Shown: in pieces, positions 3,183 to 55,945 of the stretch
Position numbering within the stretch: the first letter of the stretch is position 1
Layout of the letters: every line of letters begins with the position of its first letter
Assembly: GCA_965235115.1 (NCBI GenBank)
Contig: OZ249447.1
Span: forward strand, 18,352,001-18,416,000
Direction of reading: 5' to 3'
Source: Laetmonice hystrix
Taxonomy: Eukaryota
Length of the DNA: 64,000 nucleotides
Notes under the pieces: generated by a model
The model's input: the letters and a program-made list of their open reading frames with translations, nothing else
What the model was told of the DNA's origin: nothing
Databases searched by the model: none
Program-made: the position numbers and the translations under genes

Positions 3183-3217
3183 TCTAATTATCATCGTTCG
3201 TTTATTGCAGGGTGAGT
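3183..3217 (+). other. Fused 3'SS/5'SS with 1-nt exon (G at 3211), candidate recursive splice site
   Basis: tCTAAT branch-like motif, tcatcgttcgtttattgCAG, one G, then GTGAGT. Confidence 0.4.
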
Positions 3218-4165
3218 ACAGTATTCTCTGGATTACCGGAGGGGGCTGCAGGCCTTAGTGAATCCCTCAGGTGAGCAGCTCAATTCATCTCAATCTTAGA
3301 CGTTGGTCTCATGAGGTGGCGATCCCAGGATGATCCTCATGCGGCAGCACTGTGGATCACTGCACAGGATGATCCTTTAATGCGGCTTTACTCCAAGAGT
3401 ATTTCTAATGCTTCCCTATAATCTTGGACTTACGCCTAATTGGTCCATGCTTTTAAAGGGAAAGTAAAATACGTTAATGTGCAGAAAACATATATATTAT
3501 AACTCTTATTTTACTATGGATCTGGTTGTTGGTAAACATATCACAGATAAAATATTCATCTTTTACCTTAGGTACAAATATGATCGTTTTCCTGTGACTT
3601 TATTACAAAAAACAACAACAAAAAAACCTGGTAAAAGACGATCGTCCTTTTCAATTCATGGAAAAATATACCCAAAATGAATTTGTGTTTTAATGTGTTT
3701 CAAGACTGCAGATTTTTGAAATGTTTTTACTAGTTTGCCTTCTCTTAAGTCACCTTACCTTAAATAACTAGCTCTCTTTCTCCTAGATCGACCAAGTGAG
3801 CGACATTATTCGATATTTCGAATTCATCCAGTCAGTTTTAAACAGTTGGTATCAAGTCACAGACAGTTTGTATGATAATGATAAGATATACATTTGATGG
3901 TTACAACTTGGGACTTCAATTTTACTCAAGGAAAACAAATGGCGGAATTAGAATCTGGATGGGTGTGGGTCGATGTGCGGACCGGATGTTAGGACTTCCA
4001 CCTTGACCAGAGACTGGCCATAAGAGGTGACCCCGGGGTGCCAGGCTGATGACCGCTGGCCTGAGTGACTGGTGCCGAGAGGTGGACAGTGATGGTGACT
4101 GATGGGCTTCAGCAGGACGGTGACATGTAAACAGCTGCAGCAGCAGCCGTCGGGCGGGTGTGTTT

Positions 4166-4235
4166 GTGTACGCGTGCAGTGAGTGTACAGCTCCGCCGGG
4201 TGTGGGGGTGTACGCGTGCAGTGAGTGTACAGCTC
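4166..4235. repeat. Tandem duplication, 42-bp period, 28 bp identical core
   Basis: gtgtacgcgtgcagtgagtgtacagctc at 4166 and 4208. Confidence 0.9.
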
Positions 4236-4694
4236 GGCCGGAATGGGTCCACACTTTACCACACGGTGGCGCTGGCTGTCGACCAGCGCCCTCCGACTGC
4301 GAGAAACCCACACAGCATCATGGACTGGAGTAGGACAGTGGTGGATTGTGGAGGGAAAACGACATTTTAAAGGGGGTATGGGATGGAGATATATTTTTCT
4401 CTGTATAATATCTATGGGGAGTGACATGATCATTTCAGCCAGCATGTGCGCAATAGGTTTTAGTATTTATAATCACAATGCAAGCAAAAGCTAATGTTGG
4501 CTTGGCCTGGAGTGTCATACTGCAGGGGTAGCCCTAGAAGTGTATAGTGTTCCCCCACCCCGCCAAACTCGCGCTCTGCGGAGGACGCCCCTCCCGCCTG
4601 CCCCCAAACGGTTCTACCCCCCACCCCCGACCCCCACCCCCGTCAGCCCCCTTAGCCCCGGCCGGCCTGCCACCCAAGCCACACTATCTGTCAT

Positions 4695-5680
4695 ACCAAC
4701 GAGACTAGACAGACCGGAGGTCCAGCTCTCCCTGCCGGCAACATCTGAGAGAAATATGTACCTTATCAGGGGTAATAAATCTGACCAGGCCGCTGACCAC
4801 AGGCCAGTTCAGCACCACGTACCCTGCTGGGGCGGCACCCTTTGTACCCAGACCTGTTTTCAGACCAGAATAAAAATTTCCACATCCCCCATCAGACCCC
4901 TGACACAGTTAGAGATGGAGCTTGCCTTTTTCAGATAATCCAGCCTTTATTCCAGTGGTTTTTGTGTCATATATATTAAATCCTGACGTCAGCAACCTGG
5001 TTCAGATACTATATGACACCATAATCTAGCAGGAGATAGCTTAGTCAAGGGTTGTTAAGGGCAACTAGACGGGTGTTGGGCCACTTTTTGGCAAAGTAAG
5101 TAAATAGGTCAAGTTTTCCTTTCAAGATAACCTAAGTTTGTACCATGAAGCGATCAGTTTACGTCATATAATCGGGATCAGAATGAAGGAACAGGTAATT
5201 GCTTAACTCACTGCATTGGTAAATAAGACGTAAACAGATCGAAACACAGAGCAATTGTGCATTGATTTGAGAGTGTCTGAGAGGAGCTAACAAGGCGTGG
5301 GGGGGGGGGGGGCATAACAGAACTTCATGGCACTGCATCCTTCAAGGCCACATCACCAGTACTGATGCAGCACTATAGGGCCTAATAATAAAATAATAAT
5401 CCCTAATAGTACAAAAATCAGCAAGGATTGCAGGATCCACGAGGTGGACAGATCTGCTTCTATTGCCGTGGAGTGCAGATTCAGAATGAGATGCTCCCAT
5501 GTCATTCTGCTTGTGTAGAGGTTGTAACCTGAGCCTTGTTTGGTCCCTCCCAACCCCTCCTCACCCCTTTACTGGCGTTAGTTGGTAATCGTCTGTGACT
5601 AATTTGAAAACAAGCTCGGGTCTGGAGCCCCCAAAGAGGCCCAGCCGAGCTGGACCTCCGGTCTGTCTAGTCTCGTTGGT
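4695..5680. repeat. Perfect 34-bp inverted repeat pair (4695-4728 / 5647-5680)
   Basis: accaacgagactagacagaccggaggtccagctc and its exact reverse complement. Confidence 0.9.
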
Positions 5681-5799
5681 CATACGCTGAGCTGAAAGCA
5701 CAGGCTCACGGACCTTTCAGCCAGCTTGACGATGATGATAAGTTAGGAGTCTTTAAGATCAACGTCTGCAGTGTTGAGGATTCTGGTGGAAGGTCCGCC

Positions 5800-6330
5800 A
5801 GCATCTTCAGGAAGTAAGGTGTGTGCGCGGTGTGTGTGAGTGGCACAGCGTTGTGAATACCGTGGAGCTACCAATTCCCGGAGGTGAGCTTACAGAGCTC
5901 TACAAGAAGTGGTCTGGAAACTACCTAATCTACAGCAGTCAAGAGTTGAAGGTATTGGTCTATTGCTTTCATCAGGCACTAATATGAAACCCCGCAGTGT
6001 TCCACCGCGCAGTAGAGAACAGTTTGGTATCAGTTATGTTGCAGAAGTTGCCCAGAATTGGAGCACTGAATGATGTGTGAATTGTGTGTTTGCCAGTGTG
6101 ATCAGGAATCTGGTGGCAATGAGAGTCTGGGACCATCCCAGCAGTAATCCACCAAGCCACAGCCCGTTTTGGATCAGGACAAAAGGAGATAATTTCAATG
6201 ACCTCCAGCCCCACATTTATGGAGACAGAGGGGCGGGAGTAATATCCACTGACCATAACTCCCCTGGTTCCCCGTCAGCTAGCCATGTGACTAGGATAGG
6301 AATCACTGCTGGTTGGTGGGGGGTACTTTA
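5800..6330 (-). mobile_element. Degenerate LINE APE-endonuclease remnant
   Basis: Minus-strand peptides RGTRGVMVSGYY (RGGGV-like), VGLEVIEI, ILGNFCNI (GDFN-like), RPIPSTLDCC (PTR..TLDL-like) in the expected order with stops. Confidence 0.5.
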
Positions 6331-7218
6331 GCAATGGAGGGGTGGCTATAATATAACGGGTAGGGGGTGTGAGTGTGAAGGAGGGCAATGTTAGGATTCC
6401 AACCAGTATTTATGGCAAAGGGGTGCAGGCACCGGGCCAGTGGAGGAGGGCTGAAAACGTGGGTAGATCACTCACTCATTACAGGCTCGTTCCAAGTGGG
6501 GCAGCTGTCTCCTACCTGGACGCTGGCTACAGCTTTACCTGTGGATGGCCCCTTGCTGATGAGCTACAGATGTGGGTGGTTGGACCGGTGAGAAGGAGGA
6601 TGGCGGGATGGTGCCAGGGGAAGAAGATGAGGAGAGAGGAGAGATCAGGTGCATGGGTGTGGCCCACTGCCCCGGCTGCCTGGCTGGCTGGCTCAGTGGC
6701 TGCCCGGAGCAAGGCCAGTCCATCTACTACCTCATCAGTAAATTTAACAAACTAGGGGAAACCCACGATCTTGTTAACCTGAGACATCACAGGGAATGTC
6801 TTACATTACACCGGGCATGTCTTAGGGGCTGACTAACTGTTCATTTCAACACTCTCTCTCGCAAGATAAAAGGGTAGCAAACTGGAAAGATATGCTTCAC
6901 TCAGATCTTCAGCTACGGACACCCCAACGCCAAACCCAACCCATGACATATATATCCATGTGACCCTCATACACAGTGGGGCCACATGTATATGTCAGTC
7001 ACATGATGGGTTTCGCCCGGCCAGGTTAAAGCCTAAGGTCGTCACGCACAACCCGAGGTGCCTGGTTACCTTTGGGCTACCAGTGAACCCCACCCACCAA
7101 CACTGATGTCTATAATCCCCAGTTTGGATTGTTCTCGTAAATCGTAATTTGCAGATTTTAAATTCGGTGGCGACTTATCCATGCGCAAGTCGCCGTGGTG
7201 TGGAGGTGGGACGGCGAG

Positions 7219-7719
7219 CCCTCACTCTGTGAGATATGTGTCAATGAAGCCGGGGGGGGGGACTGGTGGCCCTCACTCTGTGAGATATGTGTCAATGAAG
7301 CCGGGGGGAACTGGTGGCCCTCACTCTGTGTGAGATGTGTCAATGAAGCCGGGGGGGAACTGTGAGATATGTGTCAATGAAGCCGGAGGGGAACTGGTGG
7401 CTCTCACTCTGTGAGATATGTGTCAATGAAGCCGGAGGGGAACTGGTGGCCCTCACTCTGTGAGACATGTGTCAATGAAGCCGGAGGGGGACGGGTGGTC
7501 CTCACTCTGTGAGATATGTGTCAATGAAGCCGGGGGAACTAGTGGCCCTCACTCTGTGAGATATGTGTCAATGAAGCCGGAGGGGAACTGTGAGATATGT
7601 GTCAATGAAGCCGGGGGGGAGAACTGGTGGCCCTCACTCTAATATGTGTCAATCCGGAGGGGAACTGGTGGCCCTCACTCTGTGAGATATGTGTCAATGA
7701 AGCCGGAGGGGAACTGGTG
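7219..7719. repeat. Minisatellite, 49-bp unit, about 11 full or truncated units
   Basis: Unit ccctcactctgtgagatatgtgtcaatgaagccggaggggaactggtgg. Confidence 0.95.
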
Positions 7720-8541
7720 TTGATGTCCCGCTGACGTGTGGGTGTGTTACCATGATCTGTTGTCAACAGGCCGGGAGTTTGGGTGGGGGGCCGGGACCCC
7801 AGGCGCTGGCCGACCGGCCTGGGGAGCTGGCCGGGAGCGGCGTCCTGAGGCCTGGCCCCGGGGACTTTTACCCCACGGCTCCTTTACCCAACCCCCTCCC
7901 CTAGCACAGCCCGCCCGCCAGACACCCATTCAGGGGGCTGCACAAGATTGTCAGGCATGCGCCATGTGTGTTAGTGTGTGCAGAGGGCCGCAGTTCCTGT
8001 GTCCTACATGATATTGATAACGCCTTTGAAATATAACGGGAAAGGGGTTATACAGGGGTTATAAAGGAGGAAAAATGGCGCTTCGTCGTGCTCACAATAG
8101 GATCATTACCAACTTAAAAGGTTACTTATTATGATGTCAGATCATGTCAAAGACATGTCAAAGAAATCAAGGCTCAGTTATTCCTGGTATCGAGTTTCTC
8201 ATTAAACTTTTGAAAATGTTAACATTTATGACACAGCATTGCCTTTATTAAGTTTAAAAAGAAAAAGATTAATGCAATGGGGTAATGTAAGTAAAAGAAG
8301 AAGTACATGTATATGCACACGATGTCAGCTTGAGGAATGAAGATGAAAACCTGAGTCAGAATTTGACATCTTAGCACAGAATAGTGAGTTGGAGAGGATC
8401 AAGATTCCTGAAACCCAAACTGACGGTATTGTATTTCTTTGAAGAAAAAAAAAGAGAACAAAAATAGTCAAAGTCATTCATGACATGGCAACACAAGTGT
8501 GGTTGAGTACATGTGTACTCGTTTCTAGCCGATAAGTAATC

Positions 8542-9323
8542 GTATTGTAACACACCGGTTGTAGCGGTATCCCGACATTTGGTCACAAGACATTTGGTCA
8601 CAAGACATTTTGTCACAAAGTGAAAGGGGCGACTTTTTGTGAAAGGGGGCGACATTTAGTCACAAAATTATTGCAGTAAAAATCTAGAAAAATAGGATTT
8701 TTGCAACAATTGAACTTTATTCAAGTGAAGAGAAATTACTGGCACAAGGTCTTCAGTCTCTGCTGAAGCTCAATGTCCAGTTTGCGTGTACGCTAATTCA
8801 TTTTGTCAACTTGTCAACTGTCACTTTTAAATGTTAAGTCTTCGACTTCAATTTTCGTGGTCAGTGTGGTTTACAATTCAATGCCCACTTTCAAATATTA
8901 AGTGGGCAAACACTCATCAATCTCTTCGAGTGATCTTCAATTTTACTGGTCAGTGGGTGGGTGGGTGGGTATTTGGGGTTTTACGCCTTGCAACAGCCAG
9001 GGTCATATCACGGCGGTGAAGATGAGATGAAAGTCAGTTTTTCTTGGTGGAGGAAACCGGAGTACCCGGAGGAAACCACCGACCTTCGGGAAGGAACTGA
9101 CTGACAAACCTTTCACACATGCAGCCCAGGCCGGGAATCGAACCCGGGTCGCAGCGGTGTGAGGCGATGGTCCTAGGTGTCATGATGGAGCTGGTTTACA
9201 GGTCTACAAATTATGCTGTGACCAAATGTCGCACCCATCACCTTGTGACCAAAGGTCCTGTGACCATGATGTCCTGCGACCTAGGACGTCCTGGGACCAA
9301 ATGTCGTCCGGTTGTAGCAATAC
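8542..9323. mobile_element. MITE/foldback-like element with inverted subterminal gacatttggtcaca repeats; contains a nested SINE
   Basis: Tandem gacatttggtcaca copies at about 8574-8670 and inverted tgtgaccaaatgtc copies at about 9215-9306; imperfect inverted ends gtattg..accgg. Confidence 0.6.
8953..9178 (-). mobile_element. tRNA-derived SINE with V/Meta-like central domain, 5' truncated
   Basis: Minus strand: box B gggttcgattcccgg, body ggtttcctccgggtactccggtttcctcc, (cacc)n tail. Confidence 0.75.
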
Positions 9324-9699
9324 AAAGTCAGTCCAGTGGTAACGCTGGCTCTGGCATTCAGCAATGTCTATCAGCAGTCAGGAACCACAAGAAGGGGCAC
9401 GGAAGGGAGGTGTAGTGTCGAGTACAAAATTCGCATGAGGAGTTACATTTGCCAGGCTGCCTCCTTCCTCATTCCATGCACGATCCCAGCGGTGACTGCC
9501 GGTGCCATCGTTGCCATGACAGTGTCCTCCCGTAACCGGTGCTGGGTCGGGATGATGGCGCCTTAATTTACAGCGTCACGTAATGAACACCCAACCTTCG
9601 GCACCTGCACACCCATAGGTGTCAGGGCACCATGTGCTTCCTGCCCAACCTATACTACCAATACATGGGTTCTGCTCCGCCAAGGTCATAATGAAAGTC

Positions 9700-10145
9700 G
9701 CCACACGCCTGCATGGCCTTGCTCAGTCCCGCATTAGGTACAAATTACCCATGTTGAGCAGCATCTTCTTGACAGAGGTCTTTTTTTTTTATCCTGTCGT
9801 ATACATCTGAGAGCCTGGGGTGATTCGGCTTCGGTAGGCGAGACAGGCGTCACCAAAGACCGTTATTATTGCAAGGCTGTGGTAAGCATCCCACAGAGCC
9901 CCTCTTTTCACATCAGGCCATTTCTCCAGGGATATCTGTAATACGGCAAGAATGCTGTAAGGTTAGGTAAGTGTCAATGGAGATGAAGCACCAATCTGAA
10001 GGCGTAATTCCTGTAATGAATGGCCAAATTCCCGAGGAAGATTGCAAAATGTGGTTTTTGGTTTGTATGGAGTATGAATGGATCGGAGTAACGTTCGAAT
10101 TAACGTTGTAAAGTTAGAAATACTTATACCTGATTCTGATGTCAT
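9700..10145 (-). mobile_element. Possible L1/Tx1-like ORF2 C-terminal remnant
   Basis: TLLRSIHT..TTFCNLPREFGHSL and IITVFGDACLAYRSR loosely resemble the zinc-knuckle C-terminus; interrupted by stops. Confidence 0.3.
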
Positions 10146-11046
10146 ATTTGGTTCACGGTTTCCGTTCTGACATCACGGAATTTTAGCTTTCATCGCGCTA
10201 AGTTAGGAATGTAGTCCACGGGTTTGGTTATCTCATTGATATAGGTCAGAGTATTCTACACTGGTTGGTCTGACATTGGTTTTAGTTCTCAGGGGGTCAA
10301 GTCACAAGGGGATAAACCCGCCATATTTTAGTTATTGTATCATGTTTCCCATCTGCCCATTATTTCTCCATTTGTTTATTTCGGATCATGATTTGCGATC
10401 TAGTTTTTCATGTGACCCTCTCTGGCATCACGGATTTAAGCTTGAAGTCTAAATGTAGGTTTAAAATGGTGGATTGCGTGGGCCTCCTTCTCTGGATGTG
10501 TGGCTGAATTTGATTGGGTTACTGGTGAAACCCTGCAGGCTACAATCAGCCGGGGCAAGGTTGGGCACGGCTTGAGAGGAACCATATGTTGTCGACCAGC
10601 CATTAGTGTTATGAGTTTCAAATCATGGCCGGTATATATACACATGGATGGGGTCCATAGGCCACCACAACCCAGCACCACCCCACCCCAGCAGCGCCAG
10701 CACCACCGCCAGCACCACCGGCCATGACCTGGCTGATGGCTGAGCAGGGGTCAGTGTTACGGCCCTGCAAACCCGAGAACGAACTGGCCAACCAACCAGT
10801 CAGTGTTGTGTTGGTGCTGACTGGCTCAGTCGTCTGAGGAAGCTGCTGCCATCCCTCACGGTACATTGAACAACCAGACGGCGATTGGGAAGAGCCAACT
10901 GGTTCAGCATCCATGCTGTTCGGGCGCTCACCCCGGTATATCCCCCCGTGGTAACTTAACCCCCACGAAATTTGGTCAGAAGTAAAGATCCATAGCCCTG
11001 ACCTTATCCCTTACCCCTAACCCGGACCCCTACACGTCCCAAAAAC

Positions 11047-11083
11047 ATATCCCTATCCTATCCCTATCCCTATCCCTATCCCT
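11047..11083. repeat. (TATCCC)n microsatellite
   Basis: About 6 copies, preceded by cccctaaccc-type motifs. Confidence 0.8.
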
Positions 11084-11699
11084 GACCTTTCTCATGCAAT
11101 ATCTGCGGTACCTATGGTCGAGTCGGAGTACTGTTTTGTTGGCTGCGCTCAAACCTAATTCACAGATTTCTCTAGGGTGCTTGGCAGGGTTCCTTCTCAC
11201 ACTCAGGGGGGTTCTGATAGGCCGTAATTACTGCCACCTGCCAGTTAATGCTGTGAGGTGCTGACTAAAGTTGATGAAGCACTGTAAGTAATAAGAGTGG
11301 CCACCAGGGGAGATTTGTATGGACTTAATATCTGACCCCCCCCCCTCGTGATTTTATAAGGTTTCTCGGTACTTTAGAGGATGCTGACCTGAAGGGGTTT
11401 GTTGATAAGGGCTCACAAGATTTGGGATGGATTTTCCAGATATTTGCAGTTCAAGTCATGTGGAGTCTCTGAAACTAGTGTGAAAGAGGTTCAAAATTTG
11501 CTTCTTTTAAAAATACTTTTAATATTACTGGAAGGAAATGAGGTCTTTGCAGTGTACCAGACAAAAAGGGAAGAAAAGGTCACGCTTTTGTAGGGAGAAT
11601 ATCGGTGTGTAGATCTCTACGCTTAACTTGGTGCTATAAGTGGCTCAGCTGGAAAAGTCCGATTTCAGATCTCCACTGACTGACTCAGCCAAAGGTAGA

Positions 11700-12330
11700 T
11701 TAGATATTGGTGCGGTGACCAACTTGTGGCGCCATGAGACGGTTTTCATGAGTCTCCTCACGGGGTGCGTACCGTCAAGATGGCTCAGATTGTGGTCATG
11801 GATACCGCCGCCTTACCAACACGAGACCGGGACCGGGTGATTGCTGGCCGATATTATCACGGGTATTGGGTGGATATAGTTTCAGCACGGTTTGGAGAAC
11901 TCTGTGAAGTGTAAGCAATGGCGATTTCATTGTCCTAAATTGAAAGATGATCGCCAGGCCTATTGGTGGTATCATGGCAAGCGAGAAAAAGACCTCTACT
12001 CACTTGTGAATTGTGAATTAAGTGTGGACTGTAGGCGGATTTATACAAGAAAGCTTGTTGTGAGGATGGCGGATGGGGGGTGTATTATAAATTCCATAAT
12101 TTGAAAGCCATTCTCAATCTCCATTTTTGTAGCATGTTGCGAAACTGTTATTAAAGCTAAAGCCCTTTAGGTATATGGCAGCGTACCACTTCCTTCATTA
12201 TTACAATTTTGCTGCATATTGTGGAACCGTTCTGTCAAGCGATTTTCCATCAAGTACACATTATGACTAAACCGTTTAGGGAAGCCACTCGCCATTATCA
12301 GTTGGAAGCTGTTGTGAGACTGTTTTAGGG
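11700..12330 (-). mobile_element. Possible Gypsy integrase remnant
   Basis: ENRLTERFHN (NGLVERFHR-like), YNTPPSA (YNSTPHS-like), PGPGLVLVR; highly degenerate. Confidence 0.3.
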
Positions 12331-14299
12331 TTCCATGCTCCATCATTAATTTAACATTGTCACCAATGGTTGCAGGTTACTGTTAACATAGCACCCACCT
12401 CCTGATGACTCACCCACTCCACGCGACTCTATCCTCCATGGTAGATTTATTACCATATTTAGACCTGGTTTTCGCAGGGTGAGGTTAACGAAGATTTAAG
12501 TTGTTCCATGTTTCGCTAAGAGTTAGAAGCGCTGGGAATCGACTCGAGTCACGAACAGTCCCTCGTCATGGCTGTTGCTATCACACATGGTTATAATCAA
12601 TGCGGCTCTCAGCCTAATCCCGAGTGTCAGCCGTGTCATATACAATGTACAATAATAACCGGGGCAATTGAAGTTAGACTAAATAGCCATTTGTCGGTCA
12701 AACGGCAGACCTGGCTGCCTCAATTTGATGGGAATGATTATTGATTGAAAATTTATAACACTATTAATAATGCGCGTATTTTGATGGAGTGTTATTACTA
12801 TAGGAGGCGAGTTTATAATTTGCGAATTCGCATTAGTTTATGTCTATTTCATTGCTTTTAAGACGTATACGTACGTACATAAGGTAGGGAGGAAGACTGG
12901 CAAGTGAAAATAATTGAGTTAGTAAATCAAAAATTGACCCACCTCTGTCAGCTCTATGATGACCGCATCCCAACCATGATCATGATAGGATCTGGGCGAA
13001 TAAAAACGGTACCCAGCATTCAAGGGAAGCGGGTGGTAAATACAAAATTGAAACATTTAAAAGAGCAACAGCTACAGTTTCAGTTTGCTAATTATACCAA
13101 AGGCTTGGAGAAAATGGTATTTTGTATTATAACGTTGTTGAATGGATGAATTCTTGCGTAAAGGGCGCAGGCGTAATTTAAAAGAGTTAAAGAGATTCCC
13201 ACGTATATGCAAGTAACCAGAACAGATACAAAGGGCAATTTCACATGTCTAACTGTAAGGGTTGTCCTTTAAATAATTTTGAGCCACAAGAGTCTGGTTA
13301 ATCATTAAACTGTTGTATCCTGCTATAACTTTGTTTTTCCGGGACTCAACCCATTTCAGATTCCATAAGCGATGTACATACATGGCGAATATATGCACCC
13401 CCAGTGTCCCCTCCGAGGGGAGATTTACTCAGAGGGTTGTTAGTGAATTAGCCAAGGAAGATTGATGAAGCCAGGCCGATATTGGGTGAGCATCAGGAGA
13501 GGACTGGCTGTAGGGGACAGCCTGTAATAGACCACGTGATAAATGACCACGGTCTAATGAATAAATGGGCAGAAATGGACTCCAACTGTTATTGGTTGAA
13601 GGAGGGGAAAGGGAGGAAAAAAAGAGAATAGTCTGGCGCGTTAATTAATGGAGCCTGTGGAACTCTTTCTGGCGAACTATTCGTTCAGGTTGCAGTCAGA
13701 GGTCCTGCTGTTGCAGAGGTATGATGGCAGTTCAAGATGCGTCAATTTCTTTTAGCCTATGATTTTGTGTTTACTTTTCCCCCGGAAAACCAGAGAAAAA
13801 CTCGTTGCACTTATTATTGGCGTACATGTTTGAATTGGATGGGTTCCACGTGTAGCGGCTTGCAGTCGTCAAATAAACTGGATGATTAATCGCTCCATCA
13901 GTACAAAAGTAAAAACAGACATAGGCTTGTAGGACGTTTGGGTCTCTTCCTGGCTGTTAGATACCGCCGTGATATTGAAGAGTCCTTTAATTTTTTGATA
14001 AGTCTCATCCCTCCTCCCCAGACGTGTGGGGAGTGGCCAAGCTCTCATTGTTTACCTCGTCCTGGAGTTTAGGAAGAGGTTCCAGACCATGCAGGACAGC
14101 AAGGTAAAGCTTGGAGAATCTAGCGAGGGAAGATAAGATAGTTTCGTATTCCTTGTACTCCACACGGGTGGGCGCTCGGCTCAAGGCCAGGGTGGTGCCC
14201 AGCGATTTATACGCTGTCGGAAACCTACCTTGGAATCGGTATTAAAAATGCAAGAAATAAAAGGACAATGTTAGATATACTCGAAAAAAAAGCACCTTC

Positions 14300-38912: not shown

Positions 38913-38919
38913 TATACTA

Positions 38920-44311: not shown

Positions 44312-44430
44312 GGGCCCAGTTTTCAAAAATTCCCATCTTGAGTAAAGCTTAAAACAGGCTTCTGATTAGCTGGCCTGATAGTTAAAAGTACGCTTTACTC
44401 AGGTTGCGAATTTTTGAAAAAACTGGGCCC
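44312..44430. mobile_element. Small palindromic MITE (gggccc-type ends), related to 15778
   Basis: gggcccagttttcaaaaattc...gaatttttgaaaaaactgggccc; internal agtaaagc/gctttact. Confidence 0.75.
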
Positions 44431-45186: not shown

Positions 45187-45600
45187 TCAGTTGTAATGTA
45201 CCAGCAGTGAGTCGAGGATAGCAGTGAGCCGAGAAGTGCTTGGCTTGGTCTCGGAGAGCCGACCCCCAAGGACATGAACCGTTTGACCTCTGTGAAAAAT
45301 GTCGCCAAGGATGAACGTGGAGGATACGGCGGGAATGGAATTCATTCCATAATCATAACTTACAGCTAGTATTTGATGGATGTGCGCAAGGAGTGCTCCT
45401 CGCGACCAGCAAATATTGATAAAGACAACAGGTTTTATTATGCTGCTTTGATAAGACGATACCGGCCGTCGGTTAGGAGGGAGGAGGGTGCTCGATAGAA
45501 TCTCCACGCTCCCAGTATCGCAGTGCTGTTTAACGCATTGAATTCTCCAGGGCTTTTTTTTAGTCGATAAGGACATTTTAAAATGTTCTTGGAACCGTGA
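45187..45600 (-). mobile_element. Degenerate LINE APE-endonuclease remnant (explains the 148-aa ORF)
   Basis: CDTGSVEIL, VVFINIC, FILGDIF (ILGDFN-like), KPSTSRLTAILD (PT.R..A.LD-like). Confidence 0.55.
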
Positions 45601-46581: not shown

Positions 46582-46726
46582 TGTGCCTTCCAGAACCGTT
46601 TCCGTTTTCAGTTTCAGGCATTCATTATAACGTTCCTGAAACGTTTGTTATTTATAACTGTGCCTTCCTAACAGAACCGTTTCCATCATTCATTATAACC
46701 TTCCTGAAACGTTTATTCTGTATAAC
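46582..46726. repeat. Imperfect tandem duplication of about 70 bp
   Basis: gtgccttcc..agaaccgtttcc..cattcattataac.ttcctgaaacgttt..tataact twice. Confidence 0.75.
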
Positions 46727-47892
46727 TCGTATAATAAGCTCTGTAATCTTTGAGTGTGGCTGCATGTTGTATTATACTTTGTGCCCTCCAGGCTCCACAG
46801 TATCCTCTGTTCCTGAGGGTACAAGTGGCGGCCTGGAGGTAGCATCACCAACCTGCCCACCCAACCGACCAAGTCTTGAACAGATTCCTTCATGGACCCC
46901 CGCGTTTCCTGTTCAGGGTCAGGGGTGAATCTAGACGTAGCATCATCTCCCAGGGTACGACCCCAGGAGGCCGGCAGTGGTAGTACTACCTACCCTGGTT
47001 GGATGGTAGGGGCGGGGCTGGGGTTGAGGGCGCCCAGTCAAGGAGAGCTTTGTGTCTGTGTTAGTGTTTCCGTGATAGCAGAGCTTCCCCTTGTTTATAG
47101 TTCAGGGCTTGCAGTAGTCGGCCTGCTATAGCTGACCCCGTCGGGACAGAATCTCAGCACCCACAAACTTCTTCTCTCCCCCAACTCAGGGACGCCGCAG
47201 TGGCCCATCCCCCACCCGTTAATTTACGCACAGTAGGGTCTAAATTAGAGCCTCTTTGATTATGTTATTGAATATTTGAACCATCATCCGGAGAGGAGAG
47301 GTCGGTTCGGAGTTTTAAACCTCTGAGTGGACTCTGCGGTAGTGTGGAGAGCATCAGTTGTCGTCAGATACGCATACATCAAGTAAGTTGTTTGGTTTTA
47401 CAGTCGAGAGACCTGGTAGAACAGACAGCGTCAAGAACTGGCATAGTTTCCACACTTAAAACCAGGAGAACCCCTGCCGCTGGGGCTCTGGCAGGGAACA
47501 CCGCCAGAACTTTATCGGTGGCATACTTAGGTCGGGTCCGTATGCGTTGAATGCAGGACAAGTAAAATGTCAACTGCATCGTTAGGAACATCGGAGAAGG
47601 CCAGTGATATTGACAGTAGATGCTGCTGCGGTTACAGTTATTTATTTAGACTGGTAAAATACCTGCTGTTAGTCTGATTGAATAAACAATCATGCCGTTA
47701 ATACACACCAGGTGTCACCACCCGTCCCGCGTCCAGGGGGGACACCGGGTTGTAGTGACACACAAAGCCGGAAAGAAGCACAAGCGAACAAAGCCTGACT
47801 GAGAACTTGCCATAGCTTGTTTTCTCAAGGGACTCTATGTATTGATTGTGAAAGCCGCAAGATTATTTAATAAAAGTAAGTTTTTGAAAACT

Positions 47893-48150
47893 TCAACGCT
47901 CCACATCTACAAGGATCTGTTTTGGTGCTAACGCACGCCACCAGAGGGCCTCAGTGAGAGAACCGGCCTCTTGGATGGAGTCGGCGAAAAGGCGGCATGG
48001 AGCTAGAGCCGACATGAAGATTCGGCCTGTCTCAGTAGGTTTTGATATCCGTAGGTACACAAGATAGAACACCATTGCTTTAGCAGGATTGGTTTCTAAA
48101 GCAGTAACACTAACAGCTTCTTGTATGAAATTGTAACGGCAAGTTTTCAG
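47893..48150 (-). mobile_element. Possible tyrosine-recombinase (DIRS/Ngaro) remnant
   Basis: LKTCRYNF..VSVTALETNPAKAMVFYL..GRIF..IQEAG loosely follows SKTD..V.I..CPV.A..YL..LF..L..AG; no catalytic motif seen. Confidence 0.25.
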
Positions 48151-49421
48151 TTGCCTTTAGAATGTTGATTTCGCGAAGTGCTCCGCACGGTCTACCATCC
48201 GAGTTTTGTCCCTGATGATGTATTACCATATCGAGTGGGTAAAAAGAGCCCTTTATCAGGACAGTAACAGGGAATGGGCATCAGGCAAGCTGTGCGTATA
48301 TACAATACTGAGCTCAACTGGGGTGATATGGTTGGATCACAAAATGGGTATTTTGTATTCAGCGTGCTGTCTGCGTGGTCTGAAATAGGGATAGGCTCTG
48401 ACAGGCCATTTATTCCACTTGGTTAGAATAGATGGTACCCGTTCAGTTTGGGCTTTCATTCCCATAAGCAAAGGGATTTTGTGACTTGCTGATGTCCTGC
48501 TACCAAAAATTTCAAGCGATACGGGGAAGCGTTACAGTCCCCATAGCTCAGTTATCTCTGTGTGGGCAATGGGACATCATGCTCAACTGCAGATAATGCA
48601 CCTTTGGTTGCTGCATGTAGAGTTTGTATTTCTAAGCAAACTCTCTTGAGAAGGTATAAATTGACTGATTTCCTAGTGTACACGAATCACAACCTTAAGG
48701 AATAATGTGCAACTCATGGATGCGGGATCGCGTGATGTCACAACATCACCACAGCTATTACATATTCAGTGGATGTTCCCAGAAACAAAAACCTATCAGA
48801 GGAACCAAAATACATTGAAAAAAACAAATTAACATTCCACTGATAGTGTAGGTTTCGGTTTGTGAATATGAGGCGGCAGTGCGTCTAACTGGTTCAGTAT
48901 TAATTTTGATGCAGTACCAGATTCTTTGATGACCTTCCCTCAATGGACACAATAGAGGTTGTTCTTTCCATGTTGTGTTTTCTTGCCATATCACTCTGCT
49001 TGCTACAATGAGTGTTGACAATATTTAGAATATTTTAATGCTTGTTTAATCCTGTGAATGGCAGACATACCCGGTAATGTGGCGAGGGTTGGGATTATTA
49101 TGAAATGGAAAGATTTTCTTCTTTGTGAATGACTGACTACAATTCTTACCAGAAAAAAAGTGCCATGCTGCAGGCCGGTTGTGCTAGAACCCCCAGTTGG
49201 TGGCCAGGCTAGTGATCAGGGCCTAATGGTAACCCCAGCAACAATACAATAGTAGTATACCCAACAGGAAACAGAGACGGAATCCATCACCACAACCCCG
49301 GGGATATGTCCATCAGTCACTGGGGGTCAAAGGTCATACCCGACGATGGGAAACAAAGGCCAGATCTTTGTGGTATATCCACGGAAACGGAAACGAATTT
49401 CACTGCGAGTCCCGCTGCTCA

Positions 49422-49874
49422 TTAAAGGGATGGAAAACACACACGGCAAATAAGGTTTCGTAGACCAAATGAAACACCAGCATTTACCTCAGGGCAATAA
49501 ATGCCATAATTACGTTGTCTGAATGAAGTAATTAACGTGTAACTGCCCGATGTGTGACGCCACTGGTTCTGCTTGTGTGTTCGTTCAACACCTCGGACGT
49601 TTACAAACGTTGGGACTCCAAACATCATGTAGACAAGGTCTGTGAGCAGAGTAACACGTAATGTTACGCAATATGCCGTGGTGTGCAGCATTCGGCTCTG
49701 ATGAATACACAAGAAGGTCAAGGTAAGAACCAGCGGCGTCACACATCGGGCAGTTACACGTTAATTACTTCATTCAGACAACGTAATTTTGGCATTTATT
49801 GCCCTGAGGTAAATGCTGGTTTTCCATTTGGTCTACAAAACCTTATTTGCCGTGTGTGTTTACCCTCACTTTAA
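49422..49874. mobile_element. Kolobok-like MITE: 149-bp inverted arms, TTAA flanks, 155-bp spacer
   Basis: TTAA|AG.. left and ..CT|TTAA right; arms 49422-49570 and 49726-49874 are near-perfect reverse complements. Confidence 0.8.
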
Positions 49875-50799
49875 TTCATGTGTTAGGGAGACGGGGGAAT
49901 CTTCAGGTGAAACATTTGTTTGGGCACGCCATAGCCTCAAGCATAGATGTAGAAATAAGTCCCTATCTATACGTCTATGGCTGCAAGTCAAGATCTTAGA
50001 AAAAGTCGCTTTGTCTTAGGTGTTTGTAAGAACATGGATTTATTTTGTCAGACACACTACGTCAGGAGACGCCATGATGTGACACAAGTAGACTCCTGTG
50101 ACACAAGTTGTTAGGAGACGGCCTGACTCCACTAGTGCACCCTTTGGTTTATAGTTATTACTAGTTCATTTGGCCTTCCTCATTGGTAATGACACTTTCT
50201 CCGGACAGATCTGACTCATTCTCAGTCGTGAACTAGAATAAATCATGATACTTTGTGGTAGAATCTCTGTTGGTGGGATAGGATTCGAGAACTATCGATC
50301 ATTACTTCTGAACTTCAATATTTATAGAGGGAAGGGATCATTGGACCAAAGAAAAGTGATAGCGCAAGTCCCAAATTAAGATTTAGGGTGGAAAGTCGAG
50401 AGGGGGACAGTGTAGTGAGTCAGCCGAAGTGTTATAAGTTATAGGACGTATCAGTGTCATATGATGTGGAAACGTATACAGACTGTAGAAGTATTTAGTT
50501 TGTGAAGTGAAACAGCATTCAAGGGTTGCGGGGAACTGGTGGTAGGTTTACGGGAAGTGTCTGTGGTTTCAGGATTTGACTCCCAGCTGACTGTCGTTAC
50601 TGGGTCAGATCTGTCCAAGTATATAACAGTATCAACGAATTAAGACAACATTTTGGTAAGTGTTGAAATATCTACGATGTGATGATATCGACAGTGCCCA
50701 GGTATCATGTGAACGCCTGTTAGTCTCGTTTCATTAAACAAGCGGCTGGTGATAGGGCCAGGCGGTGAGAGTTTTATGTGTAATCCTGGAAACTGAGGA

Positions 50800-51020
50800 A
50801 ATATCAGAGACTAGTGACAGACTGAGGAATGTTTGGCGGGTCTAGTGGGGAGGGTAGGGTGGAGGTACTCGTGTGGTCCTGAGGTTTAGTCGGCCCGCTG
50901 ACTGATCTGCTCACACTTGATGACTCTGTCGACCATCTCAGGTCCACTGAGCCGTGTGCGGTTTGGCTGTGACGCTCAGATGTTGTGGCATTCCTGTGGT
51001 CTGAGACATAGTGCAAGTAT
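50800..51020 (-). mobile_element. Possible CR1-like C-terminal remnant
   Basis: HYVSDHRNATTS...LRWST (FV..DY...TS...L.W.S-like). Confidence 0.3.
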
Positions 51021-53085
51021 TGCCGGCCTCTGTGATGGGATGGAAGGTATTGGTATTCAGGACATTTAACAACAATGATTGTCTCAGGGGTTGTTTAAAG
51101 GCCTTAGTGCTCAATGTCAGAGGTTTTATTTTAGATTAGACAAATATCTGATTAATGTACCTGGACCATGGTTATGATATAGTTGTCGACGTATTTGATC
51201 AGCTATTTAGGTGAATTTTTTTAATTTGATTTAATGATTTGATTGCAGTATGGATGAATGTAGAATTGCGGGAACCCTTTGTTTCCGTTTTCCACTATCT
51301 TGTAACACTGAGTGCAGTGGACCTGTTTTTACCAGTAGAGATCCACATGGACAGTACACTTGGCCGGACCTCATGCACTGACACAGTTTGGAAAATTACC
51401 CAGTAAGTCATCTTCTGTCATTATCTCTCAGAGAGATACAAAACACTACATAATGTATATGCGCAACAGGAATATGAGTGGAAGCCGCTGGAAACCAGCC
51501 TGCAAGGTTACACGATGATTTGACATTTTGTTTTCAAACAACAGCTTTTTTTAAAGCAGGCAGACCAGCCATTGGATTCTGAATACCATGAGGGGCTGTT
51601 AAGTCCCTAGAACGGAGTCTAGCCATACAAGCGAGAAACGGAAACGTGGAAATCAATTTGTGAGTTCCATAGATTTCTTTAGTTTGATCCAGTTTCTGGA
51701 TTTCCTGGTACATGGGGAAGCCCCAAAACTCCCGGTCTTACGCGACTCCCATAGAAATAGCCCCACCCCCACCAACAGTCTCTCGCTGTCAGTGATGAGG
51801 AGCTCACCTGCGTACTGCTGTCGTCATCCACCAACAGGAGAGAGTAGGAATCACAGCTGAGACAGGTTTTATTCAGGTAATCCCTCACTACAGCAAATCA
51901 GTTACAGTTACAGGAAGGTTTCTAGAACAACCGGAACATTAATTGGAGTTACAGATAGAACGAGGCCACATTAATGAGTTTTGGACTAATGCAGTCAACG
52001 AAATTGGAAATTATTCAGAACCCTCTATAATGTAACTTGAAACGCTTTCTAAATCGATTCAATTCTTCCACTCTTCGTAACTCAATTATGGATGGTGTTC
52101 TTCTTGTCGGATGTTTATTGGTGCACATTAATGACACACTCATCAAGCAGAATACTGAGGCTGCATGATTGAGAATGTTAAAAAATGTACTTTTGTCATG
52201 CAAGTGAGTTTCTCGGTCAAATTTCTTCACTGTCAATAGTAAGAGTGTGCCCGCCTTGACCTTCATTGTGAGGAGAAGGCCTATTGAAGTCATATGGCTA
52301 AGTGTGATGTAATCATATAAGTCCGCCTTTCTATACCAGCTAAATGGAATATCTACAAGCGGTTCGATTTCCTAGCTTTGGTCCAGCATCAAGTGTTGAT
52401 TGTTTACAACCAGAGTGTGTTATTGTGCAGCATGCCTGGAGCAGTGCCACCTGGAGTCACTGGTGGATTCTAAGGCACACCTGGAAGGAGTCAGCTGCAG
52501 ACATCCCATCAACCCACTCTTCCGTCCATCTCACTGTTTGTTGATTTCTTTGTGTTGCAAACAGTGATGACACCCTTCTATTCCCGGCTCAAGCTCTTAT
52601 GGGTGTGCATTGTTCACCCAGAATATTGTCTGCGCCAAATACAAGAAAACATTTTGAGGAGGGGGGGGGGGGGGGGCTTTGGAGGCGTGTTAGTGTTTAC
52701 AGTTACTGTATGTGTAGGAGGTTGTAGGGATGGAACCTAAATAAAACGTGATAGGGTCACGGTAGGGCGCCAGCTGGCGGGGCGGAGGACTTTGTCACGA
52801 GCGATTGGAGGAATGAGGGGAGCAATCTGATGAAACAGAATTCTTGGTCTTCATCCTCAGAGGAAATGATTTAGCCTCAGGCACTAAATGAAGTTGTTTT
52901 TTTTTGGGGGGGGGGGTTGTTTAAATTAGTGAGCTCTTTCTGGAGTTATCAAGGCAGACACCTCCATGGCCTGGATCACAGATTGAGGCAGGAGGAGCAT
53001 GTATGAGAATGTTTACACCTTGTTCACCCTTGCACATTGCCGGGTCAGCTGGCGGCCCCCACGGTGGGCACGGCGAGGGATGCAG

Positions 53086-54470
53086 AAATCATCCAGTCTT
53101 GTCCGCCTTGTACAGTATGTGAGTGTAGGATCTGGTACCAAATCATCCTGAGTGTTCTGGAGTCCGCCTTGTACAGTATGTGAGTGTAGGATCTGGTACC
53201 AAATCATCCTGAGTGTTCTGGAGTCCGCCTTGTACAGTATGTGAGTGTAGGATCTGGTACCAAATCATCCTGAGTGTTCTGGAGACCGCCTTGTACAGTA
53301 TGTGAGTGTAGGACCTGGTACCAAATCATCCTGAGTGTTCTGGAGTCAGCCTTGTACAGTATGTGAGTGTAGGATCTGGTACCAAATCATCCTGAGTGTT
53401 CTGGAGACCGCCTTGTACAGTATGTGAGTGTAGGATCTGGTACCAAATCATCCAGTGTTCTGGTGTCCGCCTTGTAAGTATGTGAGTGTAGGATCTGGTA
53501 CCAAATCATCTAGTGTTCTGGAGTCAGCCTTGTACAGTATGTGAGTGTAGGACCTGGTACCAAATCATCCTGAGTGTTCTGGAGTCTGCCTTGTACAGTA
53601 TGTGAGTGTAGGATCTGGTACCAAATCATCCTGAGTGTTCTGGAGTTCGCCTTGTACAGTATGTGAGTGTAGGATCTGGTACCAAATCATCCTGAGTGTT
53701 CTGGAGTCCGCCTTGTACAGTATGTGAGTGTAGGATCTGGTACCAAATCATCCTGAGTGTTCTGGAGTCCGCCTTGTACAGTATGTGAGTGTAGGACCTG
53801 GTACCAAATCATCTAGTGTTCTGGAGTCCGCCTTGTACAGTATGTGAGTGTAGGATCTGGTACCAAATCATCTAGTGTTCTGGAGTCCGCCTTGTACAGT
53901 ATGTGAGTGTAGGATCTGGTACCAAATCATCCTGAGTGTTCTGGAGTTCGCCTTGTACAGTATGTGAGTGTAGGATCTGGTACCAAATCATCCTGAGTGT
54001 TCTGGAGTCCGCCTTGTACAGTATGTGAGTGTAGGATCTGGTACCAAATCATCCTGAGTGTTCTGGAGTCCGCCTTGTACAGTATGTGAGTGTAGGACCT
54101 GGTACCAAATCATCCTGAGTGTTCTGGAGTCCGCCTTGTACAGTATGTGAGTGTCGGACCTGGTACCAAATCATCCAGTGTGTTCTGGAGTCCGCCTTGT
54201 ACAGTATGTGAGTGTAGGACCTGGTACCAAATCATCCTGAGTGTTCTGGAGTCCGCCTTGTACAGTATGTGAGTGTCGGACCTGGTACCAAATCATCCAG
54301 TGTGTTCTGGAGTCCGCCTTGTACAGTATGTGAGTGTAGGACCTGGTACCAAATCATCCTGAGTGTTCTGCAGTCAGCCTTGTACAGTATGTGAGTGTAG
54401 AACCTGGTACCAAATCATCCAGTGTTCTGGAGTCAGCCTTGTACAGTATGTGAGTGTAGGATCTGGTACC
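53086..54470. repeat. Minisatellite, 61-bp unit x about 23
   Basis: gtccgccttgtacagtatgtgagtgtaggatctggtaccaaatcatcctgagtgttctgga. Confidence 0.97.
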
Positions 54471-54532
54471 GGTGGCTCGGAGCCCTAGTATGGTCTCACA
54501 AATGACTCGGTTGTTACGGTCAACACCAGTAA

Positions 54533-54545
54533 CGCCCTCTAGTGG
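54533..54545 (-). promoter_or_regulatory. CTCF-like motif CCACTAGAGGGCG
   Basis: Matches the bilaterian CTCF core; similar CCACCAGAGGGC at 47938 and 58885 (+); sequence match only. Confidence 0.3.
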
Positions 54546-55945
54546 ACACTGGTGGCAACCAGATGTGGAGGATCACGTTCAGATACTCTGGGGAAGGTCC
54601 GGAGGGTTTCCCCTCCTCAGACTTATATTTGTTTTACTGACTCCTGGAACAAGTAAGGAAGGATGGCCGGGGTGCAGTTTCACCAACGTAAAGGGGGGTT
54701 AAACACCTTCAGATGGGCCATGAACTGTAAGCAGATGAGGGTTACTGGCGATATACCCTTTAATTACATACAAGTTTCATTTGTTCAGTTTTATAAAGAT
54801 ATTGAGAAAATAATGATAATTCTACTGTACATATTTTTGAACCACACTATATGGAATACTGGGTTAATGTTTGAAGGACCAGTCGATATCATCCTACAGG
54901 AGCGTCTGGTCTATACCAGTGTCATCCTCTGCTCCAGGCTCCTCTAGTCTAATATTTCAACTGGACGGTATTATCGTGAATATTTCCAATTCATCCCTGA
55001 TATAACGATGGGTCGCTCATCCATCACGCCGGTCCCTAATGTTGATATCGAACCACGCTCTCGTTTTTTGCCCATCAAGATTTTCCCCGCACATATAACT
55101 TGATCATGTCTACCCAAGTCTCCAGAGTATTAGGAACTCGCCTTTGGTCCGTCGTAACCATGTATTTTAACGACGACTGAAGCAGACATGTGGTAAGAAG
55201 GTTCTGGCAGTCGGGTTAGGGAGTTCAGTGCGATATGGGTTCGTCCTGGTTTGGAGTTGCTAGTCCCGCCACCTGATGTACGGGACTCAAGATGCTGACG
55301 GTCTCTGCTGTAACTGTAGAGGGGGAGGGTGGGGAGGGGTGCGGGGGGGGGGGGGGGTGCAGCCGGGGTCATGAATCACGAGCTGTGAGTAACAAGCGTA
55401 TGTATAGTACGGTAATACATGTGGGTGGAGACCTCAGTAGTCACTTTGAGTACACTGACGAGGTTACACTCGCCACTTCATTGGCAGCTTCTAACCAACA
55501 CACAGTCCCGGTGTTTAGTGTTGTCGGGTTCATGATACAACCAATAGTTTATACACTGGGAACAGCTCCTGTTACATTTACTGCACATGTCGTGAATACC
55601 GAAAGAAAAACCTCGCTTGATATTTAACCAGAGATTCAAGCGACGGCGGATTATAGACAGAAAGGATTACCAGTCCAGATTACCCGATATATTAGGGATT
55701 TATCCGTAATTACTCCGGTAAGATCGTTTAAGACTCAATATGCATCAAGAGTTGTTCATCCCATTGTATTTTTTTAAACTTTCACATTTAACTTTGATGA
55801 GGTCCAACAGAAATCAATGGACGGCGATATTTGCTCAGTTATAAATTGAACAATAATTCTCTTTTTTTCAGGGAGACGTTAGGAGTTCCCGGTACCAGAA
55901 AAGTATAGGAGGGACAGAGGAGATAAACTAAGAACAAACATCATC

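Follow-up and report, generated by a model that had tools for sequence, protein, structure and literature searches.

Two AG|GT junctions on the + strand of the window (the whole 64,000-nucleotide stretch of Laetmonice hystrix DNA analyzed here), at positions 21491 and 42832, fuse a 3' splice site to a 5' splice site with a quality that is far beyond chance. We consider it reasonably probable that both act in recursive splicing, as sites of the ratchet point and cryptic RS-exon type known from flies, and are located in a first intron of probably ~102 kb in a contactin-like gene; their use in RNA is predicted from the DNA letters. Stepwise removal of this intron is the best reading because the two sites possess every defining sequence feature and because the class to which they belong is enriched and laddered. 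A sequence-only reading of the window had proposed such stepwise removal through three + strand sites, at 3211, 21491 and 42832, the positions and spacings of which (18,280 and 21,341 nt between sites, and 13,040 nt from the last one to the exon at 55872) proved correct. The proposal is supported for 21491 and 42832, which display all of the fly-type sequence features, but not for 3211, for which a 60-nt exon is the better reading.

The first of the two candidates, RS-A (21465..21497, + strand), consists of a pyrimidine tract followed by tttcag|GTATGT, with the AG ending at 21491 and the GT starting at 21492. Its combined score of 10.6 is the second best of any AG|GT on both strands of 344 kb; its acceptor (9.5 bits) ranks 2nd among the ~9,500 AGs of the sense strand, over which all acceptors were ranked, and its ratchet donor (5.9 bits) ranks 33rd on that strand. 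The site is single-copy, has TT at -5/-6, an AG-free zone of 54 nt and branch-like motifs (CTGAC/TTAAC) at -35 to -25. The sole donor of at least 2 bits within 200 nt, GAG|GTAGGA with its GT at 21538, is weaker than the ratchet donor (3.7 bits versus 5.9) and ends a putative cryptic RS-exon of 46 nt (21492..21537, + strand), a length that is not a multiple of 3. The second candidate, RS-B (42811..42838, + strand), likewise presents a pyrimidine tract followed by tttcag|GTGAGT, with the AG ending at 42832 and the GT starting at 42833; no other AG|GT junction, on either strand of the 344 kb, reaches its combined score of 11.9. Its donor (8.4 bits) and acceptor rank 3rd and 7th, respectively, on the sense strand; TT is again found at -5/-6, the AG-free zone spans 42 nt and the site is single-copy. 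The putative cryptic RS-exon of RS-B, 55 nt in length (42833..42887, + strand), ends at the donor AAG|GTAAAA (GT at 42888), which scores 3.0 bits versus 8.4 for the ratchet donor. A repeat origin of the sites is ruled out as all of them are single-copy. We note that the only three public runs containing this DNA, which come from one sample and of which none is recorded as RNA, behave as genomic DNA over 40500-45499, with even coverage of the intron at a depth of 26-60, and that the core of RS-B is free of variants in these DNA runs while SNPs occur approximately every 27 nt nearby; the variant-free gap at 42823-42861 has a chance probability of ~0.24.

The matrices used to score splice sites represent an approximate metazoan consensus, not trained on this species, and the real coding exons of the contactin-like gene score much lower under them. 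When the 2,609 AG|GT sites present on the two strands of 344 kb were scored, no more than four reached 9.7, all of them on the sense strand indicated by GC skew. Within the gene region, the third-best AG|GT scores 9.7 and the fourth 5.7, and the best - strand AG|GT near the gene scores 3.9; in the window itself the next best + strand site after RS-B and RS-A remains below 5, in agreement with the earlier observation that other such junctions are weaker. The comparison with a weight-matrix background that the sequence-only reading had called for also favors the two sites: when the sense strand is simulated with Markov models, 0.03-0.04 sites scoring at least 10.5 are expected per 104 kb, against 2 observed, and 0.08 sites scoring at least 9.5, against 3 observed. 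The pattern TTTCAGGTRWGT, picked post hoc, occurs twice in the window versus 0.05 times in dinucleotide shuffles. An AG-free zone of at least 40 nt is found upstream of only 5.6% of AGs, and a donor of at least 3 bits at +25 to +100 is expected by chance at 0.12 per site.

This class of sites is enriched and laddered across the L. hystrix genome. Matches to TTTCAGGTRAGT number 378 genome-wide versus 155 for the reversed control and those to TTTCAGGTATGT 161 versus 62, such that zero-spacer 12-mers exceed their controls 2.4- to 2.6-fold, with ~40-45% of the exact 12-mer matches representing expected background. A downstream AGGTRA is found 28-58 nt away in 35 cases (30 non-tandem) versus 9 (6 non-tandem) at 128-158 nt, a ~5-fold difference, and RS-B is among the ~30 non-tandem loci matching TTTCAGGTRAGT-N(28-58)-AGGTRA. 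On contigs C1-C3, 14 neighboring sites lie within 50 kb of one another versus 4.8 expected (P=0.0004), and 16 of the 17 neighbor pairs within 100 kb share the same strand (P=1.4e-4). The 1-nt-spacer class TTTCAGNGTRAGT, in contrast, shows no enrichment genome-wide (209 versus 195 for the control). Enrichment of the zero-spacer junction but not of the 1-nt spacer is a pattern indicative of selection for the junction as such.

The long intron ends at a predicted signal-peptide exon (55872..56024, + strand) comprising 74 nt of 5'UTR, an ATG at 55946 and 26 codons, which is preceded by the acceptor ctctttttttcag|G (7.7 bits) and followed at 56025 by the phase-1 donor AAG|GTAAGT (8.2 bits). This exon is the best of only three candidates in 144 kb that combine a methionine, a hydrophobic stretch and a donor, and its phase fits that of the Ig1a exon at 95820. 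The Ig exons, located at 95.8-103.7 kb on the + strand, were found only with Ig-motif regular expressions; neither strict splice thresholds nor translation from the top acceptors yielded any exon between 56 and 104 kb, and real exons therefore score modestly here. Pfam I-set/Ig_3 matches were obtained on Ig1b and Ig3, and Pfam and PDB searches with the 44-aa Ig2b exon gave nothing useful. The best solved relative is contactin-2 (axonin-1/TAG-1), residues 47-104 (E 1e-21) and 243-286 (E 2e-7) of which are collinear with the order of the signal peptide, Ig1, Ig2 and Ig3 exons; neurofascin is nearly equal on Ig1 (5e-21), making the L1/neurofascin family the next-nearest after contactin. Contactins combine six Ig and four FN3 domains with a GPI-anchor signal, whereas members of the L1 family are transmembrane proteins; the DNA analyzed, to +104 kb, reaches as far as the third Ig domain and showed neither FN3 repeats nor a GPI signal. 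On the evidence of the signal peptide and first three Ig domains, the host gene is predicted to encode a contactin-family IgCAM, which corrects the 'secreted-protein gene' of the sequence-only reading.

GC skew is positive without a break between -48 kb and +104 kb at the least, which suggests that transcription starts ~48 kb upstream of the window. The donor CAG|GTAAGT found 46,521 nt before the first base of the window ties for the top rank on the sense strand. Given the start of transcription suggested by GC skew, and with this donor as its 5' end, the intron is probably ~102 kb long and not ~53 kb as first estimated. The part of the intron contained in the window (1..55871, + strand) is marked by GC skew and by the lack of any Pfam-supported ORF. 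None of its ten longest ORFs gave a Pfam match above cut-off, consistent with the earlier claim that no coding exon separates the sites, and a separate + strand protein-coding gene between -48 kb and 0 was rejected as the eight longest ORFs of that region are without Pfam support. The two segments leading up to the exon at 55872 would measure 21.3 and 13.0 kb, with the sense strand and the extent of the intron deduced from GC skew, the + strand contactin exons and the lack of ORFs.

The window would accordingly be placed inside one long + strand transcription unit encoding a contactin-family neural IgCAM, the first, non-coding intron of which would start at the donor ~46.5 kb before the window and run up to the exon at 55872. 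At each of the two sites, the strong acceptor and the weak donor 46 or 55 nt downstream would define a short cryptic exon to which the upstream exon would be joined, and this joining would turn the junction back into a strong 5' splice site (CAG|GTATGT or CAG|GTGAGT). Since the rebuilt site would outcompete the weak downstream donor, the following step would remove the cryptic exon along with the 13-21 kb segment after it.

Site 3211 differs from RS-A and RS-B in its organization. Its AG ends at 3210 and is followed by a single G at 3211 and by GTGAGT from 3212; the sequence-only reading had taken it for a ratchet point, a view that fails at the level of the class: with its 1-nt spacer the site is no AG|GT junction, this spacer class lacks genome-wide enrichment, and the site's score of 10.2 is equaled at control spacings of 2-3 nt, among them that of an antisense site scoring 10.1. 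The acceptor, ttattgcag|G, has TT at -5/-6 (ttgcag), an AG-free zone of 48 nt and is single-copy. Together with the donor CAG|GTGAGC at 3271, it delimits a 60-nt exon-like unit (3211..3270, + strand) whose acceptor (6.6 bits) and donor (6.9 bits) rank second only to the signal-peptide exon among the exon-like pairs in the 142-kb gene region. Because this downstream donor outscores the internal donor G|GTGAGT, which has a 1-nt offset (5.8 bits), the reverse of the order seen in RS-A and RS-B, site 3211 is better read as an exon-like unit, probably a real 60-nt 5'UTR exon whose inclusion is optional or which is re-spliced with one G left behind. Upstream of it lies a cluster of sense-strand donors without acceptors (2325..2590, + strand; strong donors at 2325, 2488, 2531 and 2584), which includes TTACAG|GTGAGT at 2530 with a donor at +53 and without a pyrimidine tract. 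This cluster may represent an alternative first exon, and there may be an internal promoter near 2.3 kb.

These features bear on three other explanations. It could be that 21492-21537, 42833-42887 and 3211-3270 are all ordinary alternative 5'UTR cassette or 'poison' exons whose 5' GTRAGT is never re-used as a donor. Such a view accommodates the fact that every site has an acceptor and a downstream donor at 46-60 nt, as well as the donor strengths and exon-like rank of 3211-3270; it is nonetheless unlikely in that the downstream donors of 21491 and 42832 are weak, that two exons both opening precisely on a consensus 5' splice site would be very improbable by chance, and that enrichment genome-wide is confined to the zero-spacer junction and does not extend to the 1-nt spacer. 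An origin of the sites, chiefly the 2325-2584 cluster and 3212, as donors that end short alternative first exons transcribed from internal promoters appears very improbable. While the 2000-4000 bin is the densest of 76 2-kb bins, with five donors of at least 5 bits versus a mean of 0.87 per bin, and the donors at 2325-2584 are devoid of acceptors, the top-ranked acceptors and long AG-free zones of 21491, 42832 and 3211 would be needless for a first exon; moreover, CpG o/e shows no rise at 2-3 kb, its only peak being at -53.5 to -51.5 kb, and GC skew is already positive over the 48 kb upstream.

Finally, the sites might be functionless juxtapositions arising by chance in a long, G/T-skewed intron. 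The background share of the exact 12-mer counts, the choice of some patterns and thresholds after the sites had been seen, and the existence of a third outlier at -26797, which has neither TT at -5/-6 nor a downstream donor, all speak for this possibility. We regard it as quite improbable in view of the 2-3 sites observed where 0.03-0.08 are expected per 104 kb, of the independent features that 21491 and 42832 add (downstream donor, AG-free zone and TT at -5/-6) and of the same-strand laddering that holds genome-wide. The outlier at -26797 (atacag) was not accepted as a confident ratchet point since, besides these two lacks, its pyrimidine tract is weak and it falls within a 24-nt palindrome; it is retained as a further, weaker candidate site upstream of the window. 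No clear site was found in the 5' half of the ~102-kb intron, and none of the RS-A/RS-B kind in the 40-kb second intron.

Experiments have demonstrated recursive splicing in Drosophila and in vertebrates, and it is mentioned for a locust gene. Our full-text literature search brought up no description of it from annelids or molluscs; the mechanism is already known, and what would be new is the animal group. Fly-type sites lie on the sense strand of very long introns, splitting them into segments of roughly 3-60 kb. Fly ratchet points have TT at -5/-6 in 99.5% of cases and delimit segments averaging 17,953 bp (10.1101/006163), and their cryptic RS-exons are ~50 nt long with a donor weaker than the ratchet donor (Joseph & Lai, PMC8605326). 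Ratchet points with cryptic RS-exons are known from Ubx, kuz, Bx and luna, the last of which has five sites in a 108-kb intron (Duff et al. 10.1101/006163; PMC8605326). The L. hystrix candidates resemble them in their strong pyrimidine tract, (T)TTNCAG|GTRAGT motif with TT at -5/-6, inferred sense strand and probably very long intron, in the presence of several sites per intron separated by segments of 13-21 kb (~18 kb in the fly), and in their putative cryptic exons of ~50 nt, out of frame or non-coding, with a donor weaker than the ratchet donor. They differ in that the host is a non-insect invertebrate, that one site uses GTATGT and that clear sites are missing from the 5' half of the intron. 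Human recursive sites have been described in CADM1/2, NCAM1, OPCML and ROBO2 (PMC8758631), and the vertebrate RS-exons share with the present candidates a host that is a neural Ig-superfamily adhesion gene, a giant 5' intron and a mechanism relying on exon definition of the RS-exon; there, however, a single site per intron is usual and RS-exons are often annotated or included, whereas the motif and ladder spacing seen here are fly-like. A report on Arabidopsis describes a single-nucleotide exon (PMC4674806), to which 3211 would be comparable insofar as a single G would stay in the mRNA upon re-splicing at G|GTGAGT, with the differences that the 1-nt-spacer class is not enriched here and that the 60-nt exon reading is simpler.

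A broader proposal, which we hold with roughly even confidence, is that fly-type recursive splicing is not restricted to insects and that same-strand ladders of complete ratchet points, with TT at -5/-6 and cryptic RS-exons of ~50 nt, are at work throughout the genome of this animal, which is not an insect and is probably a lophotrochozoan, the 3211 unit being a variant that leaves a single nucleotide. If true, the RS-exon mechanism for giant introns of neural genes would already have existed in the protostome or bilaterian ancestor, the enriched, strand-coherent and laddered fly-type sites placing it deep in animal evolution. Such a genome would also supply a ready list of testable sites, and the locus itself yields predictions as to how a ~100-kb contactin-like intron is handled and where mutations would push a cryptic exon into the 5'UTR.

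Two tandem arrays in the intron also carry donor-like motifs on the sense strand. An 87-bp array of ~17 copies (37479..38913, + strand) contains 26 GTAAGT, some of which score 4.6-5.5 bits as donors, and a 61-bp array of 22.6 copies (53101..54470, + strand) has a GTGAGT in each copy, 23 in all.

We favour, with some reserve, recursive use of the two + strand junctions at 21491 (...ctttgtttcag/GTATGT) and 42832 (...ctatgtttcag/GTGAGT), in which an acceptor AG is fused to a donor GT with zero spacer. A sequence-only reading had proposed these sites, together with a third at 3211 (+ strand; ...gtttattgcag G GTGAGTAC, the AG ending at 3210 and the GT starting at 3212 after the single G at 3211), as a ladder for the stepwise removal of a >50-kb 5' intron ending at a signal-peptide exon that starts at 55872 (+ strand; acceptor ctctttttttcag/G). 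Inspection of the sequence reproduced exactly the positions of the three sites and their spacing, 18.3, 21.3 and 13.0 kb from 3211 through 21491 and 42832 to 55872; stepwise removal is retained here for 21491 and 42832, and both the role of 3211 and the extent of the intron are revised. The 55872 exon carries an in-frame stop, then ATG 55946 followed by 26 codons (MLLRIQLQVILLVATVTCLLARKPPK) and the donor AAG/GTAAGT at 56025.

Every AG/GT juxtaposition, on either strand, was given a score from a single acceptor matrix (-20..-3) and a single donor matrix (+3..+6), both made of approximate metazoan consensus values rather than values trained on this species. Scoring 11.9 and 10.6, respectively, 42832 and 21491 were the two best of 2,609 AG/GT on both strands of the 344 kb around the window, and likewise in 144 kb. 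A third + strand outlier (9.7) is found 26,797 nt before the window begins (-26797; negative positions are counted upstream of window base 1) and the next AG/GT in the gene region scores 5.7, in line with the earlier impression that other juxtapositions were weaker. In first- and third-order Markov simulations of the 104-kb sense strand, 0.08 sites scoring at least 9.5 were expected and three observed, and 0.03-0.04 scoring at least 10.5 were expected and two observed; 42832 and 21491 thus exceed the chance background that had been named as a check on the ladder. The pattern TTTCAGGTRWGT, picked post hoc, has two matches in the window, both on the + strand, versus 0.05 in shuffles. As a 1-nt-spacer junction 3211 scores 10.2; spacers of 2 and 3 nt, tried as controls, scored as high as 9.1-10.1, antisense strand included. 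Each of the three sites is single-copy in the 627-Mb genome.

TT occupies -5/-6 in all three sites (3/3), as in 99.5% of fly ratchet points (10.1101/006163), and each is preceded by an AG-free zone of 42-54 nt, a zone of at least 40 nt being found at only 5.6% of gene-region AGs. Each is also followed within the next 100 nt by exactly one donor-like GT of at least about 3 bits, at +60 for 3211 (6.9 bits), +46 for 21491 (3.7 bits) and +55 for 42832 (3.0 bits); by chance, a donor of at least 3 bits would fall at +25..+100 with a probability of 0.12 per site. In the fly, the cryptic RS-exon is ~50 nt long and its donor is outcompeted by the regenerated ratchet donor (Joseph & Lai, PMC8605326); the putative short downstream-donor units at 21491 and 42832 match this description, and the ratchet donor exceeds the downstream donor at both (5.9 versus 3.7 bits and 8.4 versus 3.0 bits, respectively). 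Fly segments average 17,953 bp (range 2.6-63.6 kb), and luna holds five sites in one 108-kb intron (10.1101/006163). Mechanism and anatomy would be those of the Drosophila ratchet-point/RS-exon system. Searches of one literature library turned up no paper that reports recursive splicing for annelids or molluscs.

The order of donor strengths is reversed at 3211, where the internal donor (5.8 bits) is weaker than the downstream one (6.9 bits), and among the exon-like acceptor/donor pairs of 142 kb the unit 3211-3270 is surpassed only by the signal-peptide exon. Because of this reversal and this rank we read 3211-3270 as a probable 60-nt 5'UTR exon; re-splicing at 3211 with one G left behind is only a possibility, and the 1-nt-spacer class (TTTCAGNGTRAGT) shows zero excess genome-wide (209 versus 195). 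The outlier at -26797 is single-copy and has one of the top donors. It lacks TT at -5/-6 and a downstream donor, has a poor pyrimidine tract and lies within a 24-nt palindrome (cttacctgtatctatacaggtaag; flanking piece L003:3185-3208, 26.8 kb before window base 1); its standing as a ratchet point is doubtful. In this single-copy palindrome the consensus CAG/GTAAGT donor faces its own complement, and a hairpin could mask it.

Across the genome, TTTCAGGTRAGT occurs 378 times versus 155 for the reversed pattern and TTTCAGGTATGT 161 times versus 62 for the control. Enrichment is 2.4-2.6x for the bare 12-mers, among whose matches a background share of roughly 40-45% is expected, and 5x for the RS-exon architecture. 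AGGTRA follows 28-58 nt downstream of 35 sites, 42832 included and 30 of them outside one tandem array, and at the control distance of 128-158 nt it follows nine (six non-tandem). Among the 130 matches listed on contigs C1-C3, 14 neighbours lie within 50 kb of each other versus 4.8 expected (P=0.0004), and 16/17 neighbour pairs within 100 kb share a strand (P=1.4e-4; gaps 5-94 kb). By the 12-mer excess, the downstream-donor excess and the strand clustering, a selected class of sites exists in this genome that is marked by a zero-spacer junction, a putative cryptic exon of ~50 nt and laddering on one strand; the 21491/42832 pair, on one strand and 21.3 kb apart, is a typical member.

GC skew is +0.04 to +0.21 per 4-kb bin over the entire window and both 40-kb flanks, and it stays positive for >150 kb, starting at -48 kb and reaching +104 kb or beyond. 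Upstream (240 kb scanned) the stretch between -112 and -48 kb has negative skew, with a cumulative minimum at -47.9 kb (about 18,304,100 on the contig, G000:C13) where the sign turns positive, and CpG o/e reaches its highest value in the 344 kb shortly before this switch (-53.5 to -51.5 kb). Skew sign and coding strand agree: the negative domain holds a - strand exon bearing the phosphatase motif DYINANF (Pfam Y_phosphatase, E 1.4e-3, short of the curated cut-off), and the + strand Ig exons fall in the positive one; skew looks usable as a predictor of strand and TSS for long genes in this genome. Ig-motif searches located five complete or partial Ig exons at 95.8-103.7 kb, all on the + strand: Ig1a (95820-95943), Ig1b (96332-96507), Ig2a (about 96845-97039), Ig2b (98784-98918) and part of Ig3 (about 103545-103744), Ig1b and Ig3 also matching Pfam I-set/Ig_3. 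The closest solved structures are collinear: contactin-2 residues 47-104 (E 1.1e-21; neurofascin 4.8e-21) and 243-286 (E 2.3e-7). In its host gene the case resembles the human recursive-splicing genes CADM1/2, NCAM1, OPCML and ROBO2 (PMC8758631).

The phase-1 donor at 56025 is compatible with the Ig1a acceptor, and the 55872 exon ranks first of only three candidates combining Met, a hydrophobic stretch and a donor in 144 kb. A weaker phase-1 start-exon candidate lies 7.2 kb past the window end (71223-71295; L006:7223-7295); it is signal-peptide-like (MRFNTLELTLWGLIVTVCALVAEG), has a phase-1 GTAAGT donor without an upstream acceptor, and may give the contactin-like gene an alternative start of its coding sequence. 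No comparable AG/GT was found in the 39.8-kb second intron. The top sense-strand donors of 152 kb are -26796, -46521, 42833, 2531 and 56025, of which the CAG/GTAAGT at -46521, 1.4 kb beyond the skew switch, is the candidate exon 1 donor, so that exon 1 would end 46,522 nt ahead of window base 1 (G000:C13:18305478). Given the skew switch, this donor and the lack of Pfam support for any ORF between -48 kb and 55.8 kb, the simplest model would be a single 5'UTR intron spanning about 102 kb and ending at 55872 as proposed, of which the earlier reading would have seen only the last 53 kb. Strong sense donors that lack acceptors cluster at 2325-2584, where CpG o/e is not elevated; among them is TTACAG/GTGAGT at 2530, followed 53 nt later by another donor. 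This region (2325-2590) may represent a first exon inside the intron or else a ratchet point that has degenerated.

A search of public sequencing runs for this DNA matched three, all from one sample and none of them RNA; they cover the intron around 42832 evenly and are therefore taken to be genomic DNA. Variants occur about every 27 nt near 42832 in these runs, with a C>T at -11 inside the pyrimidine tract and none in 42823-42861, a gap of non-significant length (P about 0.24). One DNA contig (run X2) departs from the reference at 42843, 11 nt past the junction, and another contig omits 1,205 nt (42482-43688) around G-rich tracts; heterozygosity is high, and these divergences look like haplotype or assembly-graph differences.

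GTRAGT is found 135 times on the + and 50 times on the - strand across the gene region. Two satellite-like tandem arrays within the intron, of 87 bp x about 17 copies (37479-38913; 26 sense-strand GTAAGT) and 61 bp x 22.6 copies (53101-54470; 23 sense-strand GTGAGT), may be U1-binding decoys or simply repeats. Farther upstream, an open frame of 490 aa that matches nothing in Pfam (- strand, L025:7611-9080, about 81-82 kb upstream) shares the negative-skew domain with the phosphatase exon, and four intronless ORFs arranged in tandem, 211-283 aa long (- strand, 135 to 126 kb upstream, flanking pieces L012-L013), have hydrophobic N-termini and a common motif (…EILYKADIVVYG…), and appear to form one secreted-protein family.
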